Assembly: GCF_032191835.1 (NCBI RefSeq)
Contig: NC_083243.1
Span: 54,808,001-54,872,000, forward strand
Origin: Heteronotia binoei
Taxonomy: Eukaryota
Direction: 5' to 3'
Length of the DNA: 64,000 nucleotides
In this document: positions 6,465 through 64,000 of the stretch, one piece after another
How the letters are laid out: each line of letters starts with the position of its first letter
Position numbering within the stretch: the first letter of the stretch is position 1
Translations under genes and position numbers: made by a program
The notes under the pieces: generated by a model
Database searches by the model: none
What the model saw: the letters and a program-made list of their open reading frames with translations, nothing else
Told to the model about the DNA's origin: nothing

Positions 6465-7556
6465 CTAATAGCCACTGATGGACCTCTGCTCCATATTTTT
6501 ATCTAACCCTCTCTTGAAGCTGGCTATGCTTGTAGCTGCCACCACCTCCTGTGGCAGTGAATTCCACATGTTAATCACCCTTTGGGTGAAGTACTTCCTT
6601 TTATCTGTTCTAACCCGACTGCTCAGCAATTTCATTGAATGCCCACGAGTTCTTGTATTGTGAGAAAGGGAGAAAAGGACTTTTTTCTCAACCTTCTCCA
6701 TCCCATGCATAATCTTGTAAACCTCTATCATGTCACCCCGCAGTCGACGTTTCTCCAAGCTAAAGAGCCCCAAGCGTTTTAACCTTTCTTCATAGGGAAA
6801 GTGTTCCAAACCTGTAATCATTCTGGTTGCCTTTTTATGCACTTTTTCCAGTGCTATAATATCCTTTTTGAGGTGTGGTGACCAGAATTGCACACAGTAT
6901 TCCAAATGAGAGCGCACCATTGATTTATACAGGGGCATTATGATACTGGCTGATTTGTTTTCAATTCCCTTCCTAATAATTCCCAGCATGGCGTTGACCT
7001 TTTTTATTGCAATTGCACACTGTCTTGACATTTTGAGTGAGTTATCTACCACGACCCCAAGATCTCTCTCTTGGTCAGTCTCTGCCAGTTCACACCCCAT
7101 CAACTTGTATTTGCAGCTGGGATTCCTGGCCCCAATGTGCATTACTTTGCACTTGGCCACATTGAACCTCATCTGCCACGTTGACGCCCACTCACCCAGC
7201 CTCAACAGATCCCTTTGGAGTTCCTCACAATCCTCTCTGGTTCTTACCACCCTGATCAATTTAGTGTCATCCGCAAACTTGGCCACTTTACTGCTTACTC
7301 TCAACTCCAAATCATTTATGAACAAGTTAAAGAGCATGGGACCCAGTACTGAGCCCTGCGGCACTCCACTGCTTACCATCCTCCACTGAGAGGACTGCCC
7401 ATTTATACTCACTCTCTGCTTCCTATTAATTAGCCAGTTTTTGATCCACCAGAGAACTTGTCCTTTTACTCCATGACTCTCGAGCTCACTAAGGAGCCTT
7501 TGATGAGGAACTTTATCAAAAGCTTTCTGGAAGTCAAGGTAAACAATATATATCGG
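6465..7556 (-). pseudogene. CR1 ORF2 reverse transcriptase, C-terminal ~360 aa, uninterrupted but 5'-truncated
   Basis: Motifs YLDFQKAFDKVPH, SGVPQGSVLGP, FADD, HLEYCVQFWSP, LEKRRLRGDMI. Confidence 0.95.
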
Positions 7557-7724
7557 GTGATTCATGTCCCATGGACATGTCCCTACGTTTTCTTAGCTGT
7601 GTCTGAGAACTATCTAAGAGAGCTTTCATTGTCTTTTGCTTTTCCTAGTATTCAGCAAACAATGCATTGACAGTCTGAGTTTTCCCATCTTTACACAGGT
7701 AGATTGCTTTGGATTCTGAATCAC

Positions 7725-9642: not shown

Positions 9643-10869
9643 GCCCGGGTTATGGGACGGAGACAGTACTGGTCGCCTTGGTAGACGATCTCCAACGGCA
9701 TCTGGATCGGGGCGGTGTGGCGGTGCTGATGTTGCTGGACCTGTCGGCCGCGTTCGACACGGTCGACCATTGGCTACTGACCCGCCGCCTCGCCGATGTA
9801 GGGGTGAGGGGGTCTGCCTTACAATGGCTTTCCTCCTTCCTCGAGGATCAGGGACAAAGGGTGGCAATTGGGGGGTGAGCGGTCCCGGAGGCGCACACTG
9901 GACTGTGGAGTGCCTCAGGGGGCAGTTCTCTCACCAATGTTATTTAATATCTATATGCGCCCCCTTGCCCAGATTGCCAGGAGACATGGACTTGGGTGCC
10001 ATCAATATGCAGATGACACCCAACTCTATCTGCTAATGGCCGGCCGGCCTGACTGCATCCCAGAGAATTTAGACCGGGCCTTGCAGGATATGGCAACTTG
10101 GTTGAGGAGGAGCGGGCTGAAACTGAATCCAGCGAAGACAGAAGTCCTTTGTCTGGGTCGGGGCGCTCGGGAAGGGGAAATACCTCTCCCAGTCTTCGAC
10201 GGGGCACCGTTGAAAGCGGCGCACCGGGTTAGGAGCCTGGGAGTTTTACTGGAGCCTTCATTATCAATGGAGGCCCAGATTGCAGCCACTGCCAAGTCAG
10301 CCTTTTTCCATCTAAGACGGGCAAAGCAGTTGGCTCCCTTCCTAGAGCGCCAAGATCTGGCAACGGTGCTTCATGCAACGGTCACCTCGAGACTGGATTA
10401 CTGTAATGCCCTCTACATGGGGCTGCCTCTGTACCGAACCCGGAAGCTGCAGCTGGCGCAGAATGCAGCAGCTAGACTGTTGTTGGGGCTTCCTAAATGG
10501 GAGCACATACAGCCTGGACTGCGCGAACTGCACTGGCTGCCAGTTATATACCGGGTTCGTTACAAAGTGCTGGTCATTACCTTTAAAGCCCTATATGGTC
10601 GAGGACCCGTCTACCTTAGGGACCATCTCTCCCCATATGAACCCCAGAGAGCACTGAGGTCAGCCGGGAAAAACTTGTTGACTATTCCCGGACCGAGAGA
10701 GGTGAAGCTGCAAACTACCCGTAACCGGGCCTTCTCCTCTATAGCCCCGAGCCTATGGAACCAACTTCCAGAGGAAATGCGGGCCCTGCGGGACCTTGAA
10801 CAGTTCCGCAGGGCCTGCAAGACCTTCCTCTTCCGACTGGCTTTCGCTGATGAAAAAGGAAACTGCTAA
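9643..10869 (+). pseudogene. L2 ORF2 reverse transcriptase fragment with one frameshift near 9870-9877 (G run)
   Basis: LLDLSAAFDTVDH, GVPQGAVLSP, YADDTQLY, LKLNPAKTE, SRLDYCN, LHWLPV motifs across ORFs 9561-9878 and 9868-10869. Confidence 0.93.
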
Positions 10870-29428: not shown

Positions 29429-32400
29429 GTCATACCATGAAGATTCTTCTGCAGGGATGGCAGCTGCAGCCAAAGCAACATTTTTAAAAATCTGCATGCC
29501 GAATCAAATCTGCAGCGGCTAGTCAGAAGCCTTGCTAGGCAAAAGCTCTATCTAGTCCTGTCCACTTTCTAAAAACACTTGGCAGGCACCAGGAAAAGTA
29601 TCAGCAGGTGCCATGGTACCTACCAGCAACACATTGGAGATCCCTAATTTAATGCTGCCTTTTTCCTGTGAGGTGCCTCTCTCAAATGAAGGAGGTTTTC
29701 ACCCCTGTAGGCAGAAAATTTTGGGTGGAGGGGCCCAGGAGAAAAAAAAATGGTGTGTGTGTGTGTGGGGGGGGGCTGTGGGGCTTGGCAGCTTCTTCCC
29801 TCCAGTGGTCAGTCCGCCCACTCCAGCTCTTTCTCGCACTGCTGCTCTTCTCCCCCTCACTGTCGCTCTCTTGTCTCGTGCTCTCTCCCCACCTTGCTGC
29901 CGCTCTCCCGCTCTCTCGCTTGCTCTCTCTTTCTCCCCCCTGCCTTACACCACAGATACACCTTGTGGTGAGTGTGGTGATTGGGCTGCTACTTAAGCGC
30001 AGGAGAAAGGGGTGGGGCGATGGTAGAGCAAGGGGTTGCTGGTGCTACCCTCGGATTCCAAGTTTCTTGGCTTCTCTCTCAGTGTGAGAAGGAGGAACAT
30101 GCCTGTAGTCAACAGAGGAGCCCTACAGAGGGAAGGGTTTTTTAAAAAATAGAGTGGCCTGGTCCCCGACCCTAGCTATAGGCCTGGAGGCCTTCCTGTG
30201 CTGGTTCTTCTGCTGTAGCAAGCCTTCACACTTAGGTTACTTTATGTCCCCCTCAAAATTGCAGCAGTTTAAAACAACAACAACAACCTGGTAACCCAAA
30301 GGGAGCAGCAAGAGTCAAGAGCAGTGTGAGGAACACAACATTATCCCGTGCAATGTGTTCTATAGACAAATGATATATTTTGCACTACTCCTTTTAATAT
30401 GGTATACACTGGTATTGAAATACTTCAACTCAAACTGTATCATAATTATTATTTATATATAATTATAATTTTGTATAAAACATTTTCTATTATTGGAAAA
30501 GATTATGTTTGTTGTTTAATGAAAACTACAAAAGAGCAGTGCGAGGGTATGAGTGTGTTGAATTTCATTTACTGATTAGAATTAACCTGGTAGCATATAT
30601 TCACTGCAGGTTTCCAATGGTTTCAGTGGGAGAACTGGGTAGTAAATGTATTTAACTTTGGCTGGATCATATCCTTTGAATCTATTAAACGTTCATAATG
30701 GAAATTATGCATATAGTGACTGACATGATAGGACATTTCTGCTTTCTTTGTATGTCAGAGAATATGTGGGAGGGGTGATCTCATGCTGTAACCTAGTGGA
30801 CAGGGGTGTGGGGATGAGCAGGACTGGAACCTTCTAATGAATGGCGTGTTCCCTTCTGTTCCTTTTCTGACAGCCTTTTTCATTGTGTCACATTGCAATA
30901 GGAGTTCATCACTAATCACTTGGTATCTGTGACGTCACAATCCCCATCTCTGGAGCAGCTTTGTACTTTGATTTTTGCTTTCTATAAATAAATTAATCAA
31001 TGAGAGAATGTTTACAAGAATAAATATTCACACAGTGCTTTCAAACAATAAAGCAGACAGCCTGCCTGAAGCATGAGTGGAGACACAAGACAGATGACTC
31101 AATCAGTGTTTGAATTGCTGATAGGTACATCTGTTGGTTGCAGTGAAAAGGTAGTATATGTGCAATATGTTGACCTTTTCCCATGGGAGAAAAAGAAAAG
31201 TAGCAAGCCCTGTTTAAAGGTACATTTGTACATATCCTGCATTGCTTTCATCAGCACTGAGTTGCAAAGTCAAGATTTCTTGCTAGTCATAGATACATAT
31301 CTGAATGAAGAGGGCAGCCAACATAAACCATTTTACCATACAGAAGCAAATATATGTAATTTATCTAAGAATTATAATTTGATCCTGAAATTGCACTATA
31401 CATACTTTCTTCCTTTCCTTTTCAGAGCTCCTATGATTAGATGTTCTTGAGCAATGACTAAATGTATAATACATTATTTACTAAAAGAAAATATGCTAGA
31501 CAGAAAATCATCTCGAAGTCTATCAAATGAGGAATGTGTTAAAAGCGGTGGGATCCAGTGGTTCCTAAAAATGATAAAAACCTAACGTTCAAATATTTTG
31601 TCTCAATTTTTCTCTGACTGCAAGAGCAGAGACGATCTGAATATGGACTACAATGGAATCTGCCCTGTAATACTTTGGAGGGGATGGCATTAAGGTGAGC
31701 TAAAGCGAATGCCCTAACACGGTGGGAGACTGTTAGTTATCAAATGCATACTGCCAGAGTCCAAGGAGGTAAGATACCGAAAAATTTACTCTTGCAAGAG
31801 CAAATCACCATACTGTTGTAATCCAGACCCGTAAATCGATGCTGGACAAGCAAAAGGGTCTTTGCCTTACTAATAAGAAGAAATCCTCTGTTGTAAACCC
31901 AGACGGCCTTAATCTAGGTCTACTGAATTCATCCATTGAGAATGGTAAGCATCTTGTTTAAGAAAAGAACCCTTCAGTTTTTGAAACAAAAATAACCCTT
32001 AGCCTTAGTTTAAAAGTGCTGAACCATGCTCTAGCTTCCAGTGACTTTTGGCCAAGTTGCACTATACATATAAACCAGAGATGTTCCAAATATTCTGGAG
32101 TGGGGCTGGGTGGGTGGGAATCTCAGCTTGGAACAAACATGCTACTGATTATGCTCAAGGAACTTTTAATCTAATCAAGCTGAAATGGAGATACTGTTTT
32201 CCCTGACAGTAAAACGTTACCAAGGTCTGATCTACCTGCAATGAAAAATTATGTATTTCAAATTCAAACACTTGTTTGATTCATCTGCAAATAGAAATCA
32301 GCCTTCACAGTCTTGCATTATGTATATTTGGAGGGGGATGACAGGGAGATGCTGCTCCAGTGGCAGTCAGTCCATTGGGGAAGGAGAATTTCAGTGTATT

Positions 32401-34651
32401 CACTCTCCTGCTGTGAAGGCAAGCTGCCTAAATGCACTGCTAAACCATCAACACAAGCTTTGTCATTTTAAAATAAGCAGGTGTATTCCTCCTTTTCAGC
32501 CTTTCTGGACTACTGGTTCACCTCACCTAAAATTTTATTGTTGAAAAATAGGCATTTATGACATGACAGCTCCCACAAAAAATGAGAGTTTTTTTTAATA
32601 ACGGGAGAATCCAGTTAAAAAACAATTGATGACTGTTGGTGACCCCAAATATTGTGGTACTCCAACCTCTACCTATTTGGTGCACACAGTTAATTCCTCC
32701 CAAGGTTCTACCTGGCCCAGGATCAATTTTTCAAATCACCACACCTTTAAAAAAAGCTGTATACTATGTTCTGTGTGAACTGATACAAATCTTTGGATTT
32801 AAAAACAACAATTCTATTTCAATGTATGTTCTTGGGCATAGGGTTGCCAGCCCTTTGCTGGCAACTGGCAAGAGGCTGGGTGTGTGTGAAGACTAATGAA
32901 ACTGGCATTCCTCAGCATGGGGATTGAGACATGGAAGTGATGAGACCATGTTGTGCAATGCTCTAGAAATTTCCCTGATATCCATGGTAAAGTCCTTAGA
33001 GATTGGAAAGATTCCAGGTGTTGATGGCACTTTTGGGTCTCCACCCAGAAGTGACATTGCATCAAAGGATGCTGATTTTCCCCACCCCTCCCAATGCTCT
33101 CAGGACCACTAGAGACCTGGGGTTTAACATTTCTATTTGGGCAGCAAAACTGATGAACTGTTGCTGACATTGTTAGAAATTTTTGTTGGTTATGAGGAAA
33201 GTGCTGGTTCTAAATTCACTTATTTGAATTCCTTCCTGGAAATATGGTAGCCCAACCTGATGTAGAAAACTAGCCACAGTCCTGAATTTGTTTCCACTGC
33301 ATAAATTAGACAGAAAACCATTTGCTTATTTTGACTTCTGTTTTTTATTCTAAAAGGCCTAGAGACTTGATTCCCCCCCCCCCTACTTGTCTTGCTAGTA
33401 GGACAAATGAACAACAGGTGGTACACCTAGATTTCAGAAACCTTTGCTTTCTATCAGCATCTCCTTTCCTTGCTCCGGCAAACCCATCTGCTTCCTCTTC
33501 TTCTCCTGCAGCAGGCTCAAAAGCTTCCTCCTGCTCTGGAGATCTTCCTCCTGGGCTACTGCCACCTAAGATGTGTCACATAAATTATTTAATCCTGGAA
33601 AAGCAGTAATACCTCAAGCATTGCATGAGCATAGATGGATTGAGCTTGTAAATCATCTGCATGCGTATATATGCATTCCTGCCTACCTACCGCCCTATCC
33701 GCCACACTTCACGCCTCCCCAGGCAAGCTACGTACCTGCCACCCTTCAGACACTCCCTCCTTCCTGCATGCATTACTTAAAGCCTTCCTCACCAACCCTC
33801 CTTTGCTCAGTAAATGAATGCACGATAAGCAATATTTGCAATGCTTGATTTTCTGCACGTGAGGCCACAGTACTGCCCATTTCAATTCCACATCTGCTTG
33901 CTAAGACGCATATTAGGTTTGGGTACCCCTGCGCACATCACTGCTTATTGCGTTTAGTGCATAGCACCAAAGAAGTGGCTGCTTCGTCAGGTAATGTACC
34001 TTCTTGCTCCTCCACCGCCACTTGAGGGACCCTCCCTGTCGGGATCTCCACCTCCCTCTGGATCCTTGTGCTCCTCCTGCTGTGGTTGGCCTGGCTGCTC
34101 CCCTTGTTCTCGTGGACGGTTGTCGACTGTGGCATGTGATGGGAAAAAACCAAGGAATACAACTCATACATGCAATTAATGTGAATGACATCACATGATA
34201 CGTGTGAGGGCCTCCATTGGATAACAAGCACACAGGCTGATCAGTGCTTAAAAAACAACAGTGCCATAAGCAGTGGTGCATTTAATATGCCTTTTAGAAT
34301 TCCTGTGTGTGCACGTAATATTATCAGAGCATAAAAGGAGGTGGGGGGGAATCATCTCATGCCTTACAGCATTAATAAAAAAGGGGGGTGGCATTTGTGT
34401 GTTGTGATCATACTCCCAATCATGGTGCCTATCCTCCACTTTCAAGAGTCAACACCATTGCATTGCTGAGTGCAAGGCTGGCCCATGCTAGCATTGGCTC
34501 TGTACTTAAAATTGCTCTGCAATTTGCAGGGCCCCTTTTTGGGTTCAAGAAACCTGATCAGAGCATAAAAGGAGGTGGGGGAGAATCATCTCATGCCTTA
34601 CAGCATTAATAAAAAAGGGGGGTGGCGTTTGTGTGTTGTGATCATACTCAC

Positions 34652-34997
34652 AATCATGGTGCCTATCCTCCCAACGGGGTCTGCCTGCGAGCTCCCACAA
34701 ACGCAGCATTGCGTCGTGGTAGGGTGTCCTCCCTGACGCCCTTGGAATTCTGCCCCAGGCCTGCAGGCTGCCCATGAAGTCACAACGGAGCCTTTTGAAC
34801 TTTGACTGGCACTGGGCTGCGGTCCGGTCATATCCCCTCTGTTGCAACCTCCTGGCTATCGCCTCATAAATGCTCCTTGTCTCCAGGTGTGTGCTAGACA
34901 TAAGCTGCTCAGCATGCCCGCTCCTCTCAGCTATGTCTAGCATCGCAAGAACTTCCTCCCGCTGCCAAAATGTGCCTCTTCTCCTTCTGGTTGCCAT
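34652..34997 (-). CDS. Harbinger Myb/SANT (trihelix-type) DNA-binding protein, exon 1; downstream exons tentative (34126-34000, 33565-~33450)
   Basis: gaaATGG start; W(QREE)...IYEAIARRLQQRGYDRTAAQCQSKFKRL is a Myb/SANT-like domain; GTGAGT donor at 34651-34646. Confidence 0.88.
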
Positions 34998-35422
34998 TTC
35001 GTAATAACGCACTTTCGATTTTGAGAGATAGTGGCCCCCCCTTTTCCTTTTAAGTTATCCAATCAGGCTGCAATGCATATGCTGATCGACAGGGGACAAA
35101 CTAAGGGAGGCAGAAGCACATTTAAGAACCCCTTGTGTATGTAAATATTCCCCCCCGCCAAAGAAATAAAAACAAGGACATAGTTCTCTTCCATTTATAC
35201 ATCCAAAAAATTTATTTGCTGTAGGAGAAAGCAGTCGCTGAACGAATGCTGCCATAACTTTAATAAATGGGCAGTTAATACATGGATAACTTTATTGCAT
35301 GGATATAGTGTCTGGGATACAGGGAACACTTGTTTGAATTGGCGTAATTACGCAACAACGCAACCGCGCAAGCGCGAGATACAAGGTCTGGCTTTCAGGA
35401 ACAGGCGGCAACAGCTGCAAAA

Positions 35423-36884
35423 TCATCTCCTTCTTCTTTGATACATATACTCTGCTACAGCATCCCGCACAATCTTCCCCCTTTCTAACTGCCTCCTGTT
35501 AATAACCCTATAGTCTGCCTCTTCTGGGTCTGGGCAGAAAGCTGTCCCCTTATCTGGAATATCCAGTGTAACCTCATGTCCCTTTTCCTCACATATGTTG
35601 TGCAGAATAACACATGCGGTCACAATGGAGAAAATGCTGTCGTACTGTGCGTTGAGTCTCAATTGCAGGACGTGCCAACGAGCCTTAAGTCTTCCGAAAG
35701 CACGCTCCACAACGTTCCTGGCCATGGTGTGTTTTCTATTATAGTGCTTCTGGATGGCCCTTCTCGGTGTCCTGAATGGAGTCATTAGCCAAGGCCTAAG
35801 GGGGTACGCTCCATCTGCCAATACAAGCGTGGGGATGCTTACATTGCCCAAAGTCACTTTGGGGTTCCCAGGAACGAAGATTCCTGCATCCACGCCGTGG
35901 TATAGGTTGCTGTTGGCGAATACGAAGGCATCGTGGGTCCTGCCGCTGAACCCAAACTCCGCATTAATGAAGCGTCCGGTGTGATCGACCGTGCCTTGGA
36001 GGATCACTGAATAGAACTGCTTCCTTTTGCAGAACTCCTCAGTTCTCCCCCCAGGCACACGAATCGGAATGTGCGACCCATCCAAAGCAGCGATGGTATG
36101 CGGCACCCCAAGTTTCCCGAAACCATCCATAATCTGTTGAGAAATGGAGCACAGTGGATGTCACGGTTATCACCGTAGTGCAATGCAACGCCCAATATAT
36201 TAGCAATAGGAAATCAACCACATTACTTTCTGACACACCGATATTGTGTTATAACGCAAAACTGACGAAGGAAATAACGCCCCCCCATACCTTTCCATTA
36301 TCGTCACCAAGGCATACGACCTTGGAAAACAAATGGGACTCGAGGGCTTCGCAAACCTCCATCACAATTCCATGAACAGTGGAAACACCGATACCAAACT
36401 GTGTACTGACAAGCCGATAGACGCATCTGTTTGTGAGGTACCATAGTGCTGCCACGAGCCGTTTTTCAGAGTGGACTGGAGACCTCATCCGTGTGCTTTG
36501 TCTGAGCATTTTGTCCTTCACAGCGGCATAAATCTCCAGGAAGGTTCCTCTGCTCATTCGGAAGTGTTCAAGCCATTGCTCATCACCCCAGAAGACAAGC
36601 ACAAAATTCTCCCACCAACCCACTTCACAGGGGTACACCCAATACCTGGGTGAGAACCGCAATCCTGCAAGATAGTGCCATCTAAGTTCATGGCGGTGAG
36701 TGCCACCTGCATTCAGTCCAAGGCGGCCATCGGACATTTCAGAAGAGAGCAGAGCCCTAAGATTTCGTCTCCGGGATCTCCTTGCATATTCATTGATGAG
36801 TTGGCGTCCGGCGTACAGGCACAAAAGCAGAACATCCACTGTGGAATAAAGACACGCCACAGTCTTGTCATCCAGATTCTCCAT
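35423..36884 (-). CDS. Harbinger (IS5-related DDE, HARBI1-like) transposase, 434 aa; exons 36884-36291 and 36133-35423
   Basis: FRMSRGTF, RLVAALWYL, QFGIGVSTV, LDGSHIPI, GRTHDAFVF, LADGAYP, RNVVERAFGRLKARW; 157-bp phase-0 GT..AG intron (36290-36134) joins the two ORFs in frame; AATAAA on minus at 35296-35291. Confidence 0.95.
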
Positions 36885-37952
36885 TGCGAATGCTTCTGCC
36901 GATACAGGGCTGTGGAGGATGCTGTGGAGGATGCTACAGCTGCAGCCAATACTTAAGCAGAAGTGGCACACGTGATGTGGTTTGCCCGTGAAAAAAAGGG
37001 GGAGGAACAGCCGTGACGTCTCACTGTTACGTTGTTACGCAGTAACGCAACCAGACTTGCACTTAAAAAAAAAAAAGATTGACAGGGCCTCAAATTCAAG
37101 TCGATGCTAGTGCGAAAACGATTTGACCCAGGGCTGCATGGAAACCGACTGCGCAAAAGAGACCATAGTGTGAAAACGAGGGAAATGGTCTGGACAGAAT
37201 TCCTCCGCGGAATATCGGTAGCAAACGCTAAGTGCGAAAACGGCCAACACGTCTAAGAGTCAGCCTACGATGAAGTCTGTTTTACAAAGTCATCAGAACT
37301 GGGACTGAGATTTTGGTAAGGGCAATTGGGTAGTAAGCTGAAATTTCCATTCAGGCCAAAAGAAGAGGGTTATATCTTCTGAGGAGAAAAATAATTCCTG
37401 TCCAGTTACACAGAGGGATTTGCTCTGAGGAGACCCCTGCTCTGTTGTGAAGAGAATTGGATTTACACACCTTGGGATATTGAAATAAACTGTGAAATCT
37501 GCGTCTACATGAAAGCTTATACCATGAATAAAAACTTCGTTGTTCTTAAAGGTGCCACTGGATTCAAACTTTGTTCTGTAATTAAAATATTCAGTCAAAC
37601 ACCTCTCACTGTTAAGATCCAAGAAGTATAATCTGTATTAACAGCAACTTTTACCTCAGCATTTCGAACCCCTGACTACGCCTATTCAGTCCCTGCCTGT
37701 TAAAAAAATAATTATTTTTGTTTGAATATTATACAGTCTCAAGTGTCATTTGAAAGGGAAAAACAGAGGGCTCCCATTTATCCCATCAATTTCCTGGGCT
37801 GGGTGAAATGACAGATTAGATCTTTGTGATGGGGTGAGACAGACAGGCTTTTAAAACAATAACTAAATCCACACCACTTGGGGGTGCTCAGTCACAGTTG
37901 GGAACTAATTTTTGGTGGGAAAACCTGCCTGAGAATACGGAAGTGCCAGGGG

Positions 37953-38020
37953 TCCGCCCTGAGTCCGCTTGCGGAGAGGGCGGGATAAAAGTCTAATGTA
38001 AATAAAAAAAATAAAAAAAT
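37953..38020 (+). mobile_element. Very short L2 3' terminus
   Basis: 34 nt identical to 55244-55277 (CCGCCCTGAGTCCGCTTGCGGAGAGGGCGGGATA) plus A-rich tail. Confidence 0.75.
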
Positions 38021-38528
38021 ATACCCTGCTACTTGTAATTGGCTTCAGTACTCTTTATTTGTTGAGCTGCTTGACTCCCAGGAACAAAATAAGGACACAT
38101 TTCAGGTTTTTAAATAGTAAACAGAACATCTGAATGCTCTGCTGCAACAGAATTTGTAATCTATTCGTTGTGATTCCTATGGAGTGTCAGTGTTGCTGTA
38201 TCAAACAGTATCATATGTTAGAGCTTCAAAATCATATCTAATTCTGTGAGCAGAATTTTGACTTCAGCAAGATGAATACAAAACTGCTTTTGTTCTTGTC
38301 AGATTACTTTTTGGGGGTCAGAATCTGGGCCAGGCATGCCCTCCAGCATCCCCTTTTCTCCAGTATGCCCAACGGGAGCCTAAGATTAGGAGAGGAGGGG
38401 GGGTCCACAGTACCCTCAGTCCTCTGTCTCTAACTCTTGGTCCACCTTTTGCCTATTTGGGTGTGGCCTAGCCAGTCCTTCCTGGCAGCTTTGGAGTCTG
38501 CCTAATATATGGTAATCTGGGTGTAAGC

Positions 38529-38734
38529 CACTGTTCCCTCTAAACTGAGTTAGTGTGAGCTAGCTCACAGTTTTTTAACCTCCAGCTCACACATTTTTGT
38601 CTTAACTTAGGAAGGATGACCCCAGAGCAAACTAATTTATGTGCAGTCAAATTGCTTGCTCACAACTTTAATGCCAGTTGCTCATGAAGTAGAATTTTTT
38701 GCTCACAAGACTCCACAGCTTAAAGGGAGCGTTG
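38529..38734. mobile_element. MITE, CAGTGTTCCCTCTAAG family (copy 2)
   Basis: Homologous to 57329-57521 and 8120-8303. Confidence 0.8.
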
Positions 38735-39544
38735 GTATGGGCACTCCACCTTGGGCTCCTCCAATGCCCTTCCTGGAGAGGTGGAGATCTGGCCCACTCT
38801 AAACTCCTGGGTCAATGACCTTTCTTGTTGTTCTCCCCCCACCATGGCCTCACCTGGCACAAGGTCTCAAGAGGCCCTCCTGCTGGCCAGTGCTGCTCTT
38901 AATAAAAAGCCAGCACTGCCATGTATCTGTTTGCTTTCTGGGTTGCCAGCCCAGGGTTGGGAAATTCTTTTGGGGGTGGAACCTGGGGAGGGTGGAGTTT
39001 GAAGAATGAAGGGACATAAGCAAGGTACAATGCCATACAGTCCACTTTCCAAAGCAGCTGTTTTCTTCATTATTGCCAGGAGATCAGTCATAAAAGCAGA
39101 GCTCCACGCCCCATCTGTAGGTTGGCAACCCAAGTTCTGGGTCCCTCCATGGCTCCTGCCAGGACTGTCTGTCTCCCCTATACCCTACAGTGACCTACTG
39201 TCATTTGTTAAAGTTCCACAGGGCCTGCAAAACAGAGTTGTTCCACTGGGTGTATCATTGAGAACAGTGATGGGTTCTATCTTGATGGTTTCCATCATGC
39301 ATTGGCCTCCTCCCTTTCTCCCCTCTCTCTTTTTTTCTCATCAGACAACTATACCTTATCCCCCTCTGAGATTTTGCACCATGTTTTAGCTGTATAGGGG
39401 GATGCATCTATTTATTATGTATTTTATAGTATGTATGTGATTATGTATTGAATGTTTGAATTGAATGTTTTTACAAATGATGTTACTCGCTCTGAGCCTG
39501 GTCTCTGGGGAGAGCAGGTTATAAATTTAATAAACAACAACATA

Positions 39545-41870: not shown

Positions 41871-42654
41871 ATGGAAATGACCAGCGGCTTGTGCAATAAA
41901 TCAACACTCAAGACTTTTGGTCATTTTTTCCCTCCTCTCTGTCCTTCAGTTTTCTCATTCTTTCTTTCCTGGGCACATCAGCAAGCCATTGCATCACCGA
42001 TTCCCCGATTCTCTATTAATTTCCCTCGTCTTTCCTTATTAGTGTCATCATCATCAATAGCAGCTAGCTCAAGCATTATAGCAATTTGGTCCCCAAACAA
42101 GCGGGACTTTTGTGTAACTTGTTATTTCAGATGGCGAATATTGTGTAGTTAGACATCCCCTTTTTTGTTAGATTGATTGCAAACTTAAGACGCAAAAGGA
42201 GTCCTCCAAAAACTGCAGGAAAGTTTTTTTGTTTGCTTGTTTAGAAAATGCTTTTTAAAAAGCATTGTGTGCGTTGGCCCCATGCATATGAGGTCTTGGA
42301 AGTTTTTTTAAAGACCTGAGGTTTGGAATTGTTTTGCATTTTTGCAATCCCTACGCGGAAAAGGTGTAGTATATTGGCGTATGCAACCAGGCAATGCTAT
42401 CAGTAGGAAAAGGATGAGAAATAAGCGTGCACGGAGTTTCTTGCCCAAAGGGGACTTCACTTTAGCTTAGTCAGAATTTTTCAACTCCAGCCCCTCCCCC
42501 ATTTTACATAGCTTTGCCTTTCTTGTACAACGTTCTGTGAAACGTTAGCCACCATTTACTCAATTAAATGCCTGATCCTAGAGTGTTTGCATGCCTCACT
42601 GCTGTAATTTGCTTCCCGGAAAACATGCATAGGATAACCTAACAGTGCATAGTA

Positions 42655-42785
42655 GGAGTCAAGCAGCACCTTTAAGACCAACTAAGTTTTATTCAGAATG
42701 TAAGCTTTGTTGGTTTTAAAGGTGAAACTTGACTCCTACTTTGTTCTACAGCTTCAGACCAACACAGCTGCCCACCTGGTTCTAA
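42655..42785. mobile_element. Penelope-like terminal fragment (related pieces at ~37525-37580, 59497-59600, 59830-59920)
   Basis: Shared TTAAAGGTG..ACT.GACTC...TTTGTTCT..GCTTCAGACCAACAC.GCT.CCCACCTG motif; family assignment from recall of sauropsid repeats. Confidence 0.4.
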
Positions 42786-59100: not shown

Positions 59101-60044
59101 GACATAGTCAATGGACTTGGAAAGGTATAATTGTGTTTAGAATTGCACTAAAAAATGACTTTGCCCCATGCCTTGTGTTACCCAACAAGTCTCTCTTAAA
59201 ATTCCAGGGATCTTCAGGACAATAATTGAGTACTGCAAAAAAAACAATGAGAAAAGGACACTAGGTATAGGTACAGCTGTTCTTCCTTTTCATGAGGGGT
59301 ATTTTTGGCATTGTTCCTGGTGCAGATACAATCCACCAAAAAAGACAGTCTCAGAACAAAGACCACCATTTAAATACCCACGGCTGAAACTACACAGTAA
59401 AAAATGGAACCCATTGTTATATATGTGCCTGTTGCATTTCTGAAAACTCCAGGCCAGTATTTCAGAATGCCTACTGTATAATCCTTCACATCAGTGACTG
59501 TTAGATTCAGGTGAGTAGCTGTGTTGGTCTGAAGTAACAGAACAAAGCTTGAGTCTGGTGGCAACTTTAAGACCAATGAAGTTTTATTCTGAACTCTGAA
59601 TTCTGTTAATATCTCACTATACATGCTAACATAATTCAGTTCTTGCATCTGTTGTAAACTCCTTTATTATGCTGTATGCTAATTTGCTGCTATTCACAGG
59701 TCTTATCAATCACCTTCATCTGGTCTTAGCTATATTTACTGCTCAGTTACTTATGCATCTTGACTTTAATTGACCTGGGAACATCACTTTCAACCTATGT
59801 GGCTTCTGTGGCTGGTGGCTTCTGTTTCACTGTATCTGGAGAAGCATGTGTGCACATGAAATCTTATACCCAGAATAACATGTTGGTTTTAAACGTATTA
59901 CTGGACTTAAACTTTGTTCTGTTAATCTTATAAATTGTTGACATATGGTCCAGTGGCTGAGAGAATGACCTGTGATCTGGGAGGCTGCCTGGTGCAAATC
60001 TCATCTCTTTTATGACCTTTCTCTCATCTTTAGTATTAATATTG

Positions 60045-63000
60045 CCCACTATATTGCCCACAATATCTGCTCTAGTTGCCCACGAACTTCTCAGGTTGAA
60101 TATCGACATAGCAGCGCTCAGTGAGGTCCGTTTCCCTGAGGAAGGTAGTCTTCAAGAACACGGTGCTGGCTATACCCTCTACTGGTCAGGTAAGTCAAAG
60201 GCTGAGAGCCGCCTTTCTGGCGTTGGCTTCATGGTCAGGAACTCCATTGCCTCCAAACTCGAAAACCTGCCAACAGGTCACTCAGATCGCATCATGTCCA
60301 TGCGCCTCCCACTTCAAAACAAGCAGCTTGCAACACTCTTCAGTGTGTATGCCCCAACCCTTCAAGCAGATCCTGCAGAAAAGAACAAGTTCTATGCTGA
60401 TCTACGCAACCTCATACGGAAGACCCCTACAGAGGACAAGGTGATCATCCTTGGCGACTTCAATGCCAGAGTAGGTAAAGACTCGGAAGCCTGGAAAGGA
60501 GTACTTGGCAAACACGGCATTGGCAACTGCAATGACAAACGGGCGCCTCCTGCTAGAATTCTGCATGGAGCACCAGCTCACCATCACCAACACTATCTTC
60601 CAGCAGAAGAACAGTCTGAAGACAACCTGGATGCACCTACGGTCCAAGCACTGGCACCTTATCGACTACATTCTGGTGCACCAGAGAGACCTTCGAGATG
60701 TCTTACACACCCGAGTAATACCCAGTGCAGAATGTCATACGGATCATCGTCTTGTACGCTGCAATTTCCGTCTTCACTTTAAAACCACACCCAGGAGAGG
60801 AGGTATCCCTCGGAGGAAGTTTCAGGTTGGCAGTCTCCAGTCAGCCGAAGTTAAAGCTGCCTTCCAGGCAAAATTCCAGTCAAGAATTGAGGACCCCAGT
60901 TGCCCCACAGACCCTTCTCCAGAAGCACTCTGGGAACACCTAAAAACTACCGTCCTGCAGATCTCTGAAGAAGTCCTCGGGTTCTCCACAAGGAAGAACA
61001 AGGACTGGTTTGATGAGAACAATCAAGAGATCCAAGATTTACTGGCGAAAAAGAGATCTGCCTACCAAGCACATCTTGCTCAGCCCTCCTGTCCTGGGAA
61101 AAAAGCAACCTTTCGCGCTGCATGTAGCAACCTCCAGCGCAAGCTTCGAGACATTCAGAACGATTGGTGGACCAAGCTTGCAGAGAGAACCCAGCTGTGT
61201 GCAGACACTGGTGATTTAAGAGGGTTCTACGAAGCCCTGAAGGCAGTATATGGTCCATCATATCAGGCTCAGAGTCCCTTGCGTAGTGCAGACGGCCAAG
61301 TGCTCCTCACAGACAAGGCATCCATACTGAACCGGTGGTCGGAGTATTTTCAGGTTCTCTTCAGTGCCAACCGCGTAGTTCAAGATTCAGCAATCCACCT
61401 CACCCCACATCAACCAGTGAAAACAGAGTTGGATGAGATCCCCACCCTAGAAGAGACTGTTAAAGCCATCAAGCAACTGAAAAGTGGTAAGGCAGCAGGA
61501 GTTGATGGAATTCCACCAGAGATCTGGAAGCATGGGGGCACAGTACTACATAGCTCACTTCACAAAGTACTTGTCACCTGCTGGGAACAAGGCAAATTAC
61601 CACAGGACTTTCGCGATGCAATCATCATCACACTATACAAGAACAAAGGGGAAAAGTCAGACTGCTCCAACTACCGGGGGATAACCCTGCTCTCCATCGC
61701 AGGCAAAATCCTTGCCAGAATACTGCTGAACAGACTGGTGCCCACCATTGCAGAAGAACTCCTCCCAGAGAGCCAGTGCGGCTTCAGAGCTAACAGGAGC
61801 ACCACCGACATGGTATTTGTTCTCAGGTAGCTCCAAGAGAAATGCAGGGAACAGAACAAGGCTCTGTATGTGACTTTTGTCGACCTTACCAAAGCTTTCG
61901 ATACTGTTAGCAGGAAAGGCCTGTGGCAAATCTTGGAACGTTTAGGATGTCCCCCAAGGTTCCTCAGCATGATCATCCAGCTACACGAAGACCAGCAAGG
62001 CCAAGTCAGACACTGTAATGACCTCTCGGAGCCCTTCCCAATAGGCACAGGTGTAAAGCAAGGCTGCGTTCTCGCGCCAACTCTCTTTACGATCTTCTTT
62101 AGCATGATGCTTCAAAGAGCCGCAGTAGATCTAGATGATGATGATGGTGTCTACATCCGCTATCGCACCGATGGCAGCCTGTTCAACCTGAGGCGACTAA
62201 AGGCCCACTCCAAGACAATGGAAAAACTCATCCGAGAGCTACTGTTTGCTGATGATGCTGCACTCGTCTCCCACTCGGTATCAGCTCTGCAGCATATGAC
62301 GTCCTGCTTTGCAGAGGCTGCCAAGCTATTCGGCCTAGAAGTTAGTCTGAAGAAGACAGAAGTTCTCCACCAGCCTGCACCCCAGGAAGATTATCACCCT
62401 CCCTGCATCACTGTGGGTGAATCAGTTCTGAAGACAGTCCAGCAGTTCAGCTACCTGGGGTGCATCATCTCCTCAGATGCCAAGATCGACAAGGAGATTG
62501 ACAACAGGCTGGCAAAGGCAAACCGTGCATTTGGCTGACTGCACAAAAGAGTGTGGAGCAACAAGCATCTGAAAAAAGGCACAAAGATCAATGTTTACAA
62601 AGCGATTGTGATGACAACCCTCATCTACGGCTCCGAATCGTGGGTTTTATACCGTCATCACCTGCGACTCCTCGAGCGCTTTCATCAGCGCTGCCTTCGC
62701 ACCATCCTCAACATCCACTGGAGTGACTTTGTGACCAACACTGAAGTCCTCAAGCGGGTGGAGGTTACCAGCATCGAGGCACTGCTGCTGAAGACACAGC
62801 TGCGCTGGGCAGGGCATATTTCTAGGATGGAAAACCACCGCCTTCCCAAGATTGCCCTGTATGGCGAACTCTCCACTGGCCATCGAAATAGAGGGGCACC
62901 AAAGAAGAGGTACAAGGACTCCTTGAAGAAATCCCTTGGCACCTGTCGCATCAACCATCACCAGTGGTCTGACCTAGCCTCAGATCGCAAAGCATGGAGG

Positions 63001-63241
63001 CACACCATCCACCAGGCTGTCTCTTCCTTTGAGAATGCACGCATAGCTGGTCTTGAGGACAAAAGGAGATTGAGGAAGAATCGCACTGCTACAGCACCAA
63101 CCCTAAATCAGACTTTTCCCTGCAGCCACTGTGGCCGGACCTGCCTGTCCCGCATTGGTCTTGTCAGCCACCAGCGAGCCTGCAGCAGACGTGGACTATT
63201 GCACCCTTCTTAAATCTTCGTTTGCGAAGCCAAGCCGAGAG
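60045..63241 (+). mobile_element. 5'-truncated RTE-clade LINE
   Basis: APE endonuclease + RT + C-terminal CxxC..H motif; short (GA) tail; perfect 13-bp TSD AGTATTAATATTG (60032-60044 / 63242-63254). Confidence 0.96.
60066..63213 (+). pseudogene. RTE ORF (endonuclease-reverse transcriptase) with three lesions
   Basis: IDIAALSEVR, ILGDFNARVG, HLIDYILV, NYRGITLLS, DLTKAFDTV, GVKQGCVLAP, LFADD, CSHCGRTC motifs; +1 frameshift ~60538, TAG 61828-61830, TGA 62536-62538. Confidence 0.95.
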
Positions 63242-63373
63242 AGTATTAATATTGACCTATTTTATAAGACAGTCTCTTGTTAATCTGACAACAGAATATA
63301 TACGAAGTGAAAAACGTAAGAAGAGCCCTGTTGAATCAGACTTCTGGTGCATCTCAGCAACCTGTTTCATACA

Positions 63374-63658
63374 GGGCGTTTTCGCACTGACCTTAATCGG
63401 CAGCGAAGCCCCTCTTCAGCGCGCAGGATCTGCGCGGATTTCGCACTAATTGCCGCGGAGCACCCGGAAGACCCGGAAAGTCCCGCGGCTTTTGCGCGCA
63501 AGTGGAAACCACCAAAAACCAGTTTCCATTTGCGCTGCAAAAGCCGCGGGACTTTCCGGCTCTTCCGGGTGCTCCGCGGCAATTAGTGCGAAATCCGCGC
63601 AGATCCTGCGCGCTGAAGAGGGGCGTCGCTGCCGATTAAGGTCAGTGCGAAAACGCCC
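63374..63658. mobile_element. 285-bp fold-back Harbinger MITE
   Basis: 136/137-bp arms (3 substitutions, 1 indel), 12-nt loop; TIR GGGCGTTTTCGCACT; 3-bp TSD ACA. Confidence 0.92.
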
Positions 63659-63853
63659 ACAGAGTCAATAATCAGGGCCTGTAGACAAAGGCCTCCTATG
63701 ATTGGTATTCAGAGGTCTGATGCCTCTGAGTATAGAGGTTTGCTTTAGTCACCCCGGCATGTGTCACCATGGTTCAGAATGCTTTAGTCCACCATCGCTT
63801 TAGTCATCATGGTCCAGAGTGCAGCCATGCAGATTATGATAGGGATCCCTCCA

Positions 63854-64000
63854 TCTCTCTCTCTCTCTCTCTCTCTCGGCTTGGCTTTGCGAACGAAGAT
63901 TTAAGAAGGGTGCAATAGTCCACGTCTGCTGCAGGCTCGCTGGTGGCTGACAAGACCAATGCGGGACAGGCAGGTCCGGCCACAGTGGCTGCAGGGAAAA
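63854..64000 (-). mobile_element. 3' end of another RTE copy, running off the window
   Basis: Reverse complement of 63114-63243 with 2 mismatches; (GA)12 tail. Confidence 0.93.

Follow-up and report, generated by a model that had tools for sequence, protein, structure and literature searches.

A probably immobile, 3'-truncated PIF/Harbinger transposon with an open transposase frame in the gecko Heteronotia binoei

Results

Organization of the locus

The window analysed here is a stretch of 64,000 nucleotides of the H. binoei genome (NC_083243.1, positions 54,808,001 to 54,872,000), in which we studied an element of approximately 3.8 kb lying on the minus strand (33450-37245, the 3' truncation point being approximate). 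This element carries a spliced transposase gene with a Myb/SANT gene downstream of it, and is bounded on its 5' side by a TIR and a set of subterminal repeats (Table 1). On its predicted domain content (a DDE_Tnp_4 domain with its catalytic triad, accompanied by a Myb/SANT gene), the element belongs to the PIF/Harbinger transposons.

Table 1. Features of the PIF/Harbinger element and of the related MITE, in window coordinates
Feature	Position	Strand	Description
5' TIR	37231..37245	minus	GGCCGTTTTCGCACT; outer element end; matches both MITE termini base for base
Three direct subterminal repeats, CGTTTTC(G/A)CACT	37242-37231, 37178-37167, 37120-37109	minus	candidate binding sites of the Myb-like protein
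Transposase exon 1	36884..36291	minus	198 aa, no stop; N-terminal region and HTH_Tnp_4
Transposase intron	36290..36134	minus	157 nt, GT..AG, phase 0; read from the sequence
Transposase exon 2	36133..35423	minus	236 aa (36133..35426) and stop at 35425-35423; DDE_Tnp_4 core and the family's conserved C-terminus
Myb exon 1	34997..34652	minus	115 codons + 1 nt; donor GTGAGT at 34651; complete Myb_DNA-bind_4
Duplicated 132-nt block	34540-34671 and 34306-34437	minus	122/132 identical; end of Myb exon 1 and start of intron 1
Myb exon 2	34000..34126	minus	127 nt; frame shifted by one base with respect to P0001
Putative Myb exon 3	33450..33565	minus	acidic, low complexity; after it, recognisable element sequence ends
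Related palindromic MITE	63374..63658		285 bp; terminal GGGCGTTTTCGCACT and subterminal motifs common with the element

The transposase gene is open and keeps its catalytic triad

An earlier, sequence-only reading of this DNA had joined two minus-strand ORFs through a canonical 157-bp phase-0 intron into a transposase with all three catalytic motifs, and our analysis agrees with it on both points. Both exons are open and the splice borders are canonical (donor AAG/GTATGG and acceptor CTCAACAG/A, the slash marking the exon boundary), while the unspliced frame meets a stop 42 nt inside the intron (ORF 36249..36971). Full-length relatives without interruption are collinear with the protein across the resulting junction (...LGDDNGK / IMDGF...), and exon 1 aligns end to end with the N-terminal halves of squamate Harbinger transposases of 420-460 aa. 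The length of 434 aa given here for the protein is the sum of the two exons (198+236), the homology searches having been run exon by exon.

In exon 2, the DDE_Tnp_4 domain (PF13359) is recognized over the full 158 positions of the Pfam profile (E=6.8e-31), and exon 1 contains a weak match to HTH_Tnp_4 (E=3e-4). The motifs DGSH, ADGAY and VERAF are all found and the D-D-E triad is intact, with D18, D107 and E143 of exon 2 falling on invariant or nearly invariant columns of the alignment with the relatives. It had been cautioned that the usual NRK motif reads KRK in this protein; the sequence FCKRKQF is indeed present, but the caveat is a minor one, because the first position of the motif is not invariant in the family (NWK in P0001, the H. 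binoei protein described below, and NCK in P0124). A PDB sequence search with exon 2 returned nothing meaningful, and a tblastn search against a phage collection, irrelevant to the present case, gave no match.

The Myb gene is frameshifted and incomplete

As had been proposed, a Myb/SANT gene follows the transposase on the same strand, and its first exon is matched by Myb_DNA-bind_4 (PF13837) with E=1.6e-12. The second copy of the duplicated block that spans the end of this exon has GG in the place of the GT donor. In exon 2, the similarity to P0001 passes from one frame (DNRPREQ...DPDREGP) to the next (QVAVEEQE), with the shift located in a C run at 34028-34026 and its direction read against one automatic gene model, P0001. 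When spliced with this frameshift, the Myb frame reaches a stop at 33558-33556, inside the putative exon 3, a region that matches residues 144-168 of a second H. binoei protein, P0160, only weakly (E=0.5). The conserved last Myb exon (TRRMDA..RR, with a coiled-coil), which is found in both P0001 and P0160, has only chance-level matches in the 64-kb window, and the element is therefore 3'-truncated. In consequence, the description of the element as a two-gene transposon holds in so far as both genes are present, but not as regards the integrity of the Myb gene. No second, convergent Myb gene was found among the ORFs of 32000-39000.

Element ends and the related MITE

The three subterminal repeats (CGTTTTCRCACT) are spaced by 64 and 58 nt. 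The terminal/subterminal motif has eight matches in the window, against an expectation of 1.78 (a count of eight was reached in none of 100 shuffles), and all but one of these matches belong to the 5' end of the element or to the arms of the MITE. In the light of the Harbinger mechanism, as outlined in PMC9179366, the repeats may serve as binding sites for the Myb-like protein. The GTT that adjoins the 5' TIR (37248-37246, minus) would be one copy of a 3-bp target site.

On the opposite side, no opposite-strand or inverted match of the terminal motif that would fit a 3' end was found in the window, in agreement with the earlier observation of a single TIR; a match at 29829 was considered as a 3' TIR and rejected on inspection. 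We read this absence as a truncation of the present copy and not as evidence against its membership in the PIF/Harbinger family, and the missing 3' end and single TIR also support the earlier view that the copy, as it stands, is immobile. A second copy of the element was found in the window neither by self-BLAST of 33000-37800 nor by tblastn with approximately 160 Harbinger proteins.

The MITE is flanked by a 3-bp TSD (ACA), its arms are identical at 120 of 122 positions and its CpG observed/expected ratio (o/e) is 1.3. We considered whether it could be a deletion derivative of the copy at 33450-37245 and rejected this origin, because beyond approximately the first 20 nt only the motifs are common to the two sequences.

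CpG content

Retention of CpGs in the element, another claim of the sequence-only reading, is evident in the o/e, which amounts to 0.57 over 33450-37245, whereas the two flanks have values of 0.16 and 0.13 and the window as a whole has 0.27. The boundaries of the CpG-rich block are sharp (near 37250-37268 and at 33476, the last CpG), the former coinciding with the 5' TIR. The o/e approaches 1 both in the 5' region (0.99 in 36885-37260) and in the transposase intron (0.96). Since these values exceed what is expected of a methylated relic that is short of about a quarter of its coding CpGs, methylation may be lacking at the 5' end, or the insertion may be younger than one would judge from the divergence of the proteins.

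Relatives and changes specific to this copy

A search of 5.8 billion protein clusters yielded only two close relatives, both from H. binoei (P0001 and P0160), with identities of 87-92% for the transposase and 80% for the Myb protein; all other proteins are at most 58% identical, and no relative above 92% was found in the protein collection, Logan assemblies included. The product of the transposase gene itself is not among the public annotated proteins, where both searches would have listed it. P0001 (LOC132570120) is 92% identical to exon 1 (over 89 comparable residues), 89.5% to exon 2 (over 181) and 91% to Myb exon 2, and P0160 (annotated as 'ZSCAN20-like', 257 aa) is 80% identical to Myb exon 1. 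These two proteins lie on different chromosome-size records (186.7 and 173.2 Mb), neither of them identical to the window, which suggests two further loci of the element family.

The gene models of the close relatives are degenerate or chimeric as well. In particular, P0001 is a chimera, in which a transposase devoid of its first ~110 residues and of its C-terminus is spliced to Myb exon 2 and the last Myb exon, and it carries replacements of its own at conserved positions. In a first tree the end branch of P0001 was too long, because its non-homologous Myb-derived tail inflates it, and the comparison was redone on trimmed segments. The tree nests the element in a gecko-only clade of transposases within the squamates, and consequently there is no signal of horizontal transfer, for which the element had been put forward as a candidate.

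Relative to 14 outgroups, 270 comparable codons contain 13 replacements specific to the window copy and eight specific to P0001. Nine of the 13 are CpG-to-TpG/CpA transitions. Four of the 13 affect positions kept by 11-14 of the 14 outgroups, namely A144V and A151T (exon 1) and N36K and M81V (exon 2). The transposase's own changes are mostly products of CpG deamination, some of them at otherwise invariant positions, and part of them may predate the insertion, having arisen in an active lineage. Under neutral mutation at the observed divergence, the probability of encountering no stop in the frame is 0.35-0.39 (about 0.37).

Discussion

The element at this locus is probably a 3'-truncated, immobile and moderately old copy of a low-copy gecko PIF/Harbinger family, whose transposase frame is open without being under selection. 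In a complete element of this kind, the Myb-like protein would bind the subterminal repeats and bring in the DDE transposase, which would cut at the GGSCGTTTTCGCACT termini and reinsert the element, duplicating 3 bp of target. The present copy keeps its 5' terminus together with the subterminal repeats and the open two-exon transposase gene with its DDE triad. The 3' terminus and the last Myb exon(s) are missing, and Myb exon 2 is also frameshifted; as a result, the copy can neither be excised nor provide a complete Myb partner. A moderate age of the copy, and not selection, would explain why the transposase frame is still open. We thus infer neutral decay and a moderate age for this copy.

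The sequence-only reading had instead proposed a young family, recently or still active, and this finds no support in our results. The element that such a proposal calls for (both genes intact, both ends present, near-identical sister copies) was not found: the copy is truncated, its Myb gene is frameshifted, its relatives are 80-92% identical, its replacements mostly reflect CpG decay and fall partly at invariant positions, and its frame may well have stayed open by chance. As far as the protein relatives go, the family approaches, without reaching, the state that the same reading had named as contrary to its proposal, namely copies diverged from each other and no intact full-length member. 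A very recent insertion with a functional transposase, belonging to a family with recent or ongoing activity in this lineage, where the enzyme may still mobilise matching MITEs in trans, is hence unlikely, even if the 434-codon frame with its intact triad and the strong retention of CpGs relative to the flanks speak for it. The same can be said of the young look of the MITE (with its shared termini, nearly identical arms, TSD and high CpG o/e) and of P0160, a Myb partner of 257 aa that looks complete and is annotated at another place in the H. binoei genome. As the MITE shares only termini and motifs with the element, however, a different family may move it. We find it similarly improbable that the family is alive in H. 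binoei through intact two-gene masters located elsewhere, with the open transposase and/or P0160 acting in trans on CpG-rich palindromic MITEs.

An intact transposase in an otherwise decaying element, together with a CpG o/e gradient that peaks at the 5' end, could also reflect a transposase that has been domesticated or is becoming a host gene, where an expressed, unmethylated promoter would explain both the open frame and the CpG-rich 5' end; such a gene would resemble the Harbinger copy next to the harbiTRIM cluster of squamates (PMC12262214). We regard this as very unlikely, considering that the 5' TIR and the subterminal repeats are still intact, that the product is absent from the public annotated proteins, that its closest relative, instead of belonging to an ortholog series, is a copy in decay, and that the replacements at invariant positions are mostly due to CpG decay. 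Additionally, among the window's ORFs the 20 largest (small exons could escape) contain only LINE RT/EN and no TRIM, butyrophilin or PRY-SPRY domain, and identity with the Harbinger of the harbiTRIM locus was rejected on this ground. Least probable of all is that the copy was brought here by a segmental duplication or rearrangement, as a piece of an older insertion, and not by transposition. Such an origin would account for the single terminus, and the region is repeat-rich, with LINE fragments, but the CpG-rich block starts exactly at the TIR, as at a true 5' insertion boundary, and no duplicated flank was found in the window.

The closest known counterparts of the element are the canonical animal PIF/Harbinger transposons, for instance zebrafish Harbinger3_DR (Kapitonov and Jurka 2004; Sinzelle et al. 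2008, both as cited in PMC9179366). The likeness extends to the DDE_Tnp_4 and Myb/SANT-like genes, the short TIRs, the subterminal repeats and the 3-bp target duplication (here in the related MITE), whereas the gecko copy differs in being one-ended, in its broken and truncated Myb gene and in the phase-0 intron separating the HTH and DDE parts of its transposase. TWA is the typical Harbinger target site, and the flanks seen here, GTT for the element and ACA for the MITE, differ from it.

Among the geckos, P0001 and P0160 represent the same element family as the window copy, P0160 differing in that it retains a complete Myb protein, of which the window copy has no full version. The multi-copy Harbinger families of leopard gecko and Paroedura picta (P0121-P0140, P0123, P0004) belong to the same clade and have the same N- and C-terminal layout in 420-435 aa, but their transposases are only 50-58% identical to that of the window copy. 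The leopard gecko has over 25 annotated paralogs, as against only two proteins of the window element's family in H. binoei. With HARBI1/NAIF1 and the squamate harbiTRIM-locus Harbinger (PMC12262214) the copy shares an open transposase frame at an immobile locus, and it is set apart from these domesticated genes by its retained TIR, subterminal repeats and intact triad, with no sign of constraint, of an ortholog series or of TRIM/PRY-SPRY neighbours in the 64 kb. Harbinger-Snek of the sea kraits, cited in PMC10379679 and PMC9179366 as a recent, massive and horizontally acquired expansion, is also a squamate Harbinger; in contrast to it, the gecko tree is consistent with vertical descent and the gecko family looks low-copy.

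An active family would represent a rare case of a cut-and-paste transposon alive in an amniote, where few DNA transposons still move, and would amount to a natural system of two components supplied with a matching MITE substrate. On present evidence, we are dealing with an ordinary decaying Harbinger copy in a gecko genome, with the activity of its family unproven, and an open transposase frame together with retained CpGs is insufficient for calling a family active. The analysis also flags the RefSeq model LOC132570120 as a transposase-Myb chimera, and supplies this element family's terminal and subterminal motif.

Structure of the element

The observation made in the sequence-only reading is confirmed, and the element is a genuine Harbinger copy (feature coordinates are collected in the table). 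The 434 amino acids assigned to the spliced, uninterrupted transposase are the sum of the two exons, which were searched one by one and each aligned alone against full-length squamate relatives. The unspliced frame (36249..36971 in the ORF list) closes 42 nt inside the intron. Exon 1 corresponds to the N-terminal half of the relatives, with its terminal ...LGDDNGK opposite their ...LGGEVGQ, and exon 2 begins with IMDGF, as they do; since both sides of the junction are collinear with the relatives, no residue is gained or lost by splicing. Exon 2 covers the entire Pfam DDE_Tnp_4 profile (E=6.8e-31), and the match of exon 1 to HTH_Tnp_4 is weak (E=3e-4). The three catalytic motifs are indeed present, with D18 (DGSH), D107 (ADGAY) and E143 (VERAF) of exon 2 in invariant or near-invariant columns. 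So is the unusual KRK (for NRK), a motif whose third-position K is invariant and whose first position varies across the family. Additionally, exon 1 carries about 20 additional residues around ...SSEMSDGRLGLNAGGTHRHE... (approximately residues 50-80, 36740-36650) compared with all aligned relatives; as P0001 (the LOC132570120 protein of H. binoei) does not extend over this region, they may be either a family trait or particular to this copy.

Features in the window
Feature	Position	Strand	Details
Transposase exon 1	36884..36291	minus	198 aa, stop-free translation
Transposase intron	36290..36134	minus	157 nt, phase 0, donor AAG|GTATGG, acceptor CTCAACAG|A
Transposase exon 2	36133..35426	minus	236 aa, stop-free; stop codon 35425-35423
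Myb/SANT gene exon 1	34997..34652	minus	Myb_DNA-bind_4, E=1.6e-12
Myb exon 2	34126..34000	minus	127 nt; 91% match to P0001 in one frame (DNRPREQ...DPDREGP)
Palindromic MITE	63374-63658		285 bp; arms 120/122 identical, CpG o/e 1.3
LINE fragments	6465-7565; 9868-10869; 60012-62538	minus; plus; plus	RVT_1 + endonuclease domains

At the 5' end, GGCCGTTTTCGCACT (starting at 37245, minus strand) aligns base for base to both MITE termini, the element and the MITE having the terminal 15 nt and a subterminal motif in common. The core of this motif, CGTTTTC(G/A)CACT, occurs in three direct copies within 140 nt of the element 5' end and twice per MITE arm; the window holds 8 matches where 1.8 would be expected (0 of 100 shuffles attained 8). 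No copy in the opposite orientation lies downstream of the Myb gene; a motif match at 29829, considered as a 3' TIR, was rejected (two mismatches, unrelated surrounding sequence). Based on the match to the MITE ends, the repeats and the lack of an inverted motif downstream, the 5' end is a genuine terminus of Harbinger type, its repeats being candidate binding sites for the Myb protein, and the element lacks its 3' terminus, as the failure to find a second TIR had indicated. Element sequence is recognisable down to ~33450-33480, so that the copy is 3'-truncated. The MITE, flanked by a 3-bp TSD (ACA, 63371-63373 and 63659-63661), looks younger than the autonomous copy. The MITE, together with a short (CT)n run, lies between two inverted copies of one ~120-nt sequence resembling a LINE 3' tail (63100-63230 and 63880-64000).

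The two-gene description holds in that a Myb/SANT gene lies downstream of the transposase on the same strand, but this gene is frameshifted and incomplete. Its exon 1 is 80% identical to P0160, a 257-aa H. binoei Myb protein and its nearest relative. In exon 2, identity to P0001 resumes after DPDREGP with an identical QVAVEEQE in the next frame, which places the window copy one base off register at the C run 34028-34026; once spliced onto the candidate exon that follows (33565 onwards), the frame meets a stop at 33558-33556. The conserved last exon (...TRRMDA(F/M)(D/E)RR...), which P0160 has in common with the C-terminal region of P0001, occurs nowhere in the 64-kb window, and the most that the element can encode is a Myb domain lacking the C-terminal portion. 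A 132-nt block with the exon-1 donor is present twice (34540-34671 and 34306-34437, 234 nt apart, 122/132 identical); the downstream copy, whose donor GT reads GG, is a decoy exon end.

Relatives of the element

Word-indexed HMMER searches of 5.8 billion protein clusters (RefSeq geckos and Logan assemblies included) returned P0001 as the sole protein more than 58% identical to the window transposase (trimmed segments: 92.1% in exon 1, 89.5% in exon 2) and P0160 as the sole protein close to the Myb exon. The product of the window transposase itself is absent from this collection, although both searches spanned its length range. P0001 and P0160 lie on separate records (186.7 and 173.2 Mb), and the three loci, all from H. 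binoei, are probably paralogous copies with ~10-20% protein divergence. The public, automatic LOC132570120 gene model is a chimera: a Harbinger transposase core without N- and C-termini, running from MSRGTF and cut past ...ILHNI, is joined in frame to the neighbouring Myb exon 2 and last Myb exon.

A tree built from 40 transposases pairs the window copy with P0001 at 100% support and places the pair within a gecko-only group, beside Paroedura families and nested in squamates. This pattern suggests vertical inheritance with no sign of horizontal transfer, for which the family had been put forward as a candidate. For the leopard gecko, annotation lists more than 25 paralogs from a sister lineage, compared with two annotated proteins for the window family.

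Age, selection and activity

The open frame, together with the Myb gene and the retained CpGs, had been taken to mean a young family, recently or still active, which is unproven and the less likely reading. We polarised the 26 window-P0001 differences (over 270 codons) with 14 outgroup transposases, obtaining 13 window-specific, 8 P0001-specific and 5 ambiguous replacements. Four window-specific changes (exon 1: A144V, A151T; exon 2: N36K, M81V) fall at positions conserved in 11-14 of the 14 outgroups, and nine of the 13 lie in TG or CA dinucleotides, exactly as CpG deamination predicts (GCG->GTG, cGCx->cACx, CGC->CAC, TCG->TTG), which appears to be the signature of methylated, unconstrained sequence. 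When both exons were mutated in silico at the observed replacement level (~30 substitutions in 1302 nt), ~1 stop was expected and the probability of no stop was 0.35-0.39, still non-negligible with 1-2 indels added. A moderately young copy in plain decay could thus still show an uninterrupted frame. The retained CpGs are real (o/e 0.57 over 33450-37245 against 0.13-0.16 in the flanks, with sharp edges at ~37250-37268 and ~33476), and the o/e of ~1 in the transposase intron and the 5' end is the one observation that points the other way; it may reflect an insertion so recent that most changes are older, or a hypomethylated 5' end. Domestication of the transposase is unlikely, given the retained terminus and repeats, the altered conserved positions, the lack of an ortholog series and the absence of its product from public annotation.

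Harbinger elements encode a Myb-like protein that binds the transposase, enables the joint nuclear import of the two and binds TIR-sequence DNA; the DDE transposase then excises the element, integration generally yielding a 3-bp duplication (Sinzelle et al. 2008, cited in PMC9179366). On this scheme, the three CGTTTTCRCACT repeats would be the Myb sites and GGSCGTTTTCGCACT the cleavage terminus. Lacking its second end and a complete Myb protein, this copy cannot move, in agreement with the immobility already suspected. Its transposase could conceivably act in trans alone, provided that it is transcribed, active despite the four conserved-position replacements and partnered by a Myb protein from another copy.

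A squamate harbiTRIM locus adjoins an intact Harbinger (PMC12262214), but the window does not match it: its 20 largest ORFs hold LINE reverse-transcriptase/endonuclease domains alone, with no host-gene domains seen among them, and the window is repeat-rich. Just beyond the element 5' end (37507-37579) lies a ~55-70-nt interspersed repeat with three further copies (42642-42747, 59537-59589 and 59854-59922; 76-85% identical).
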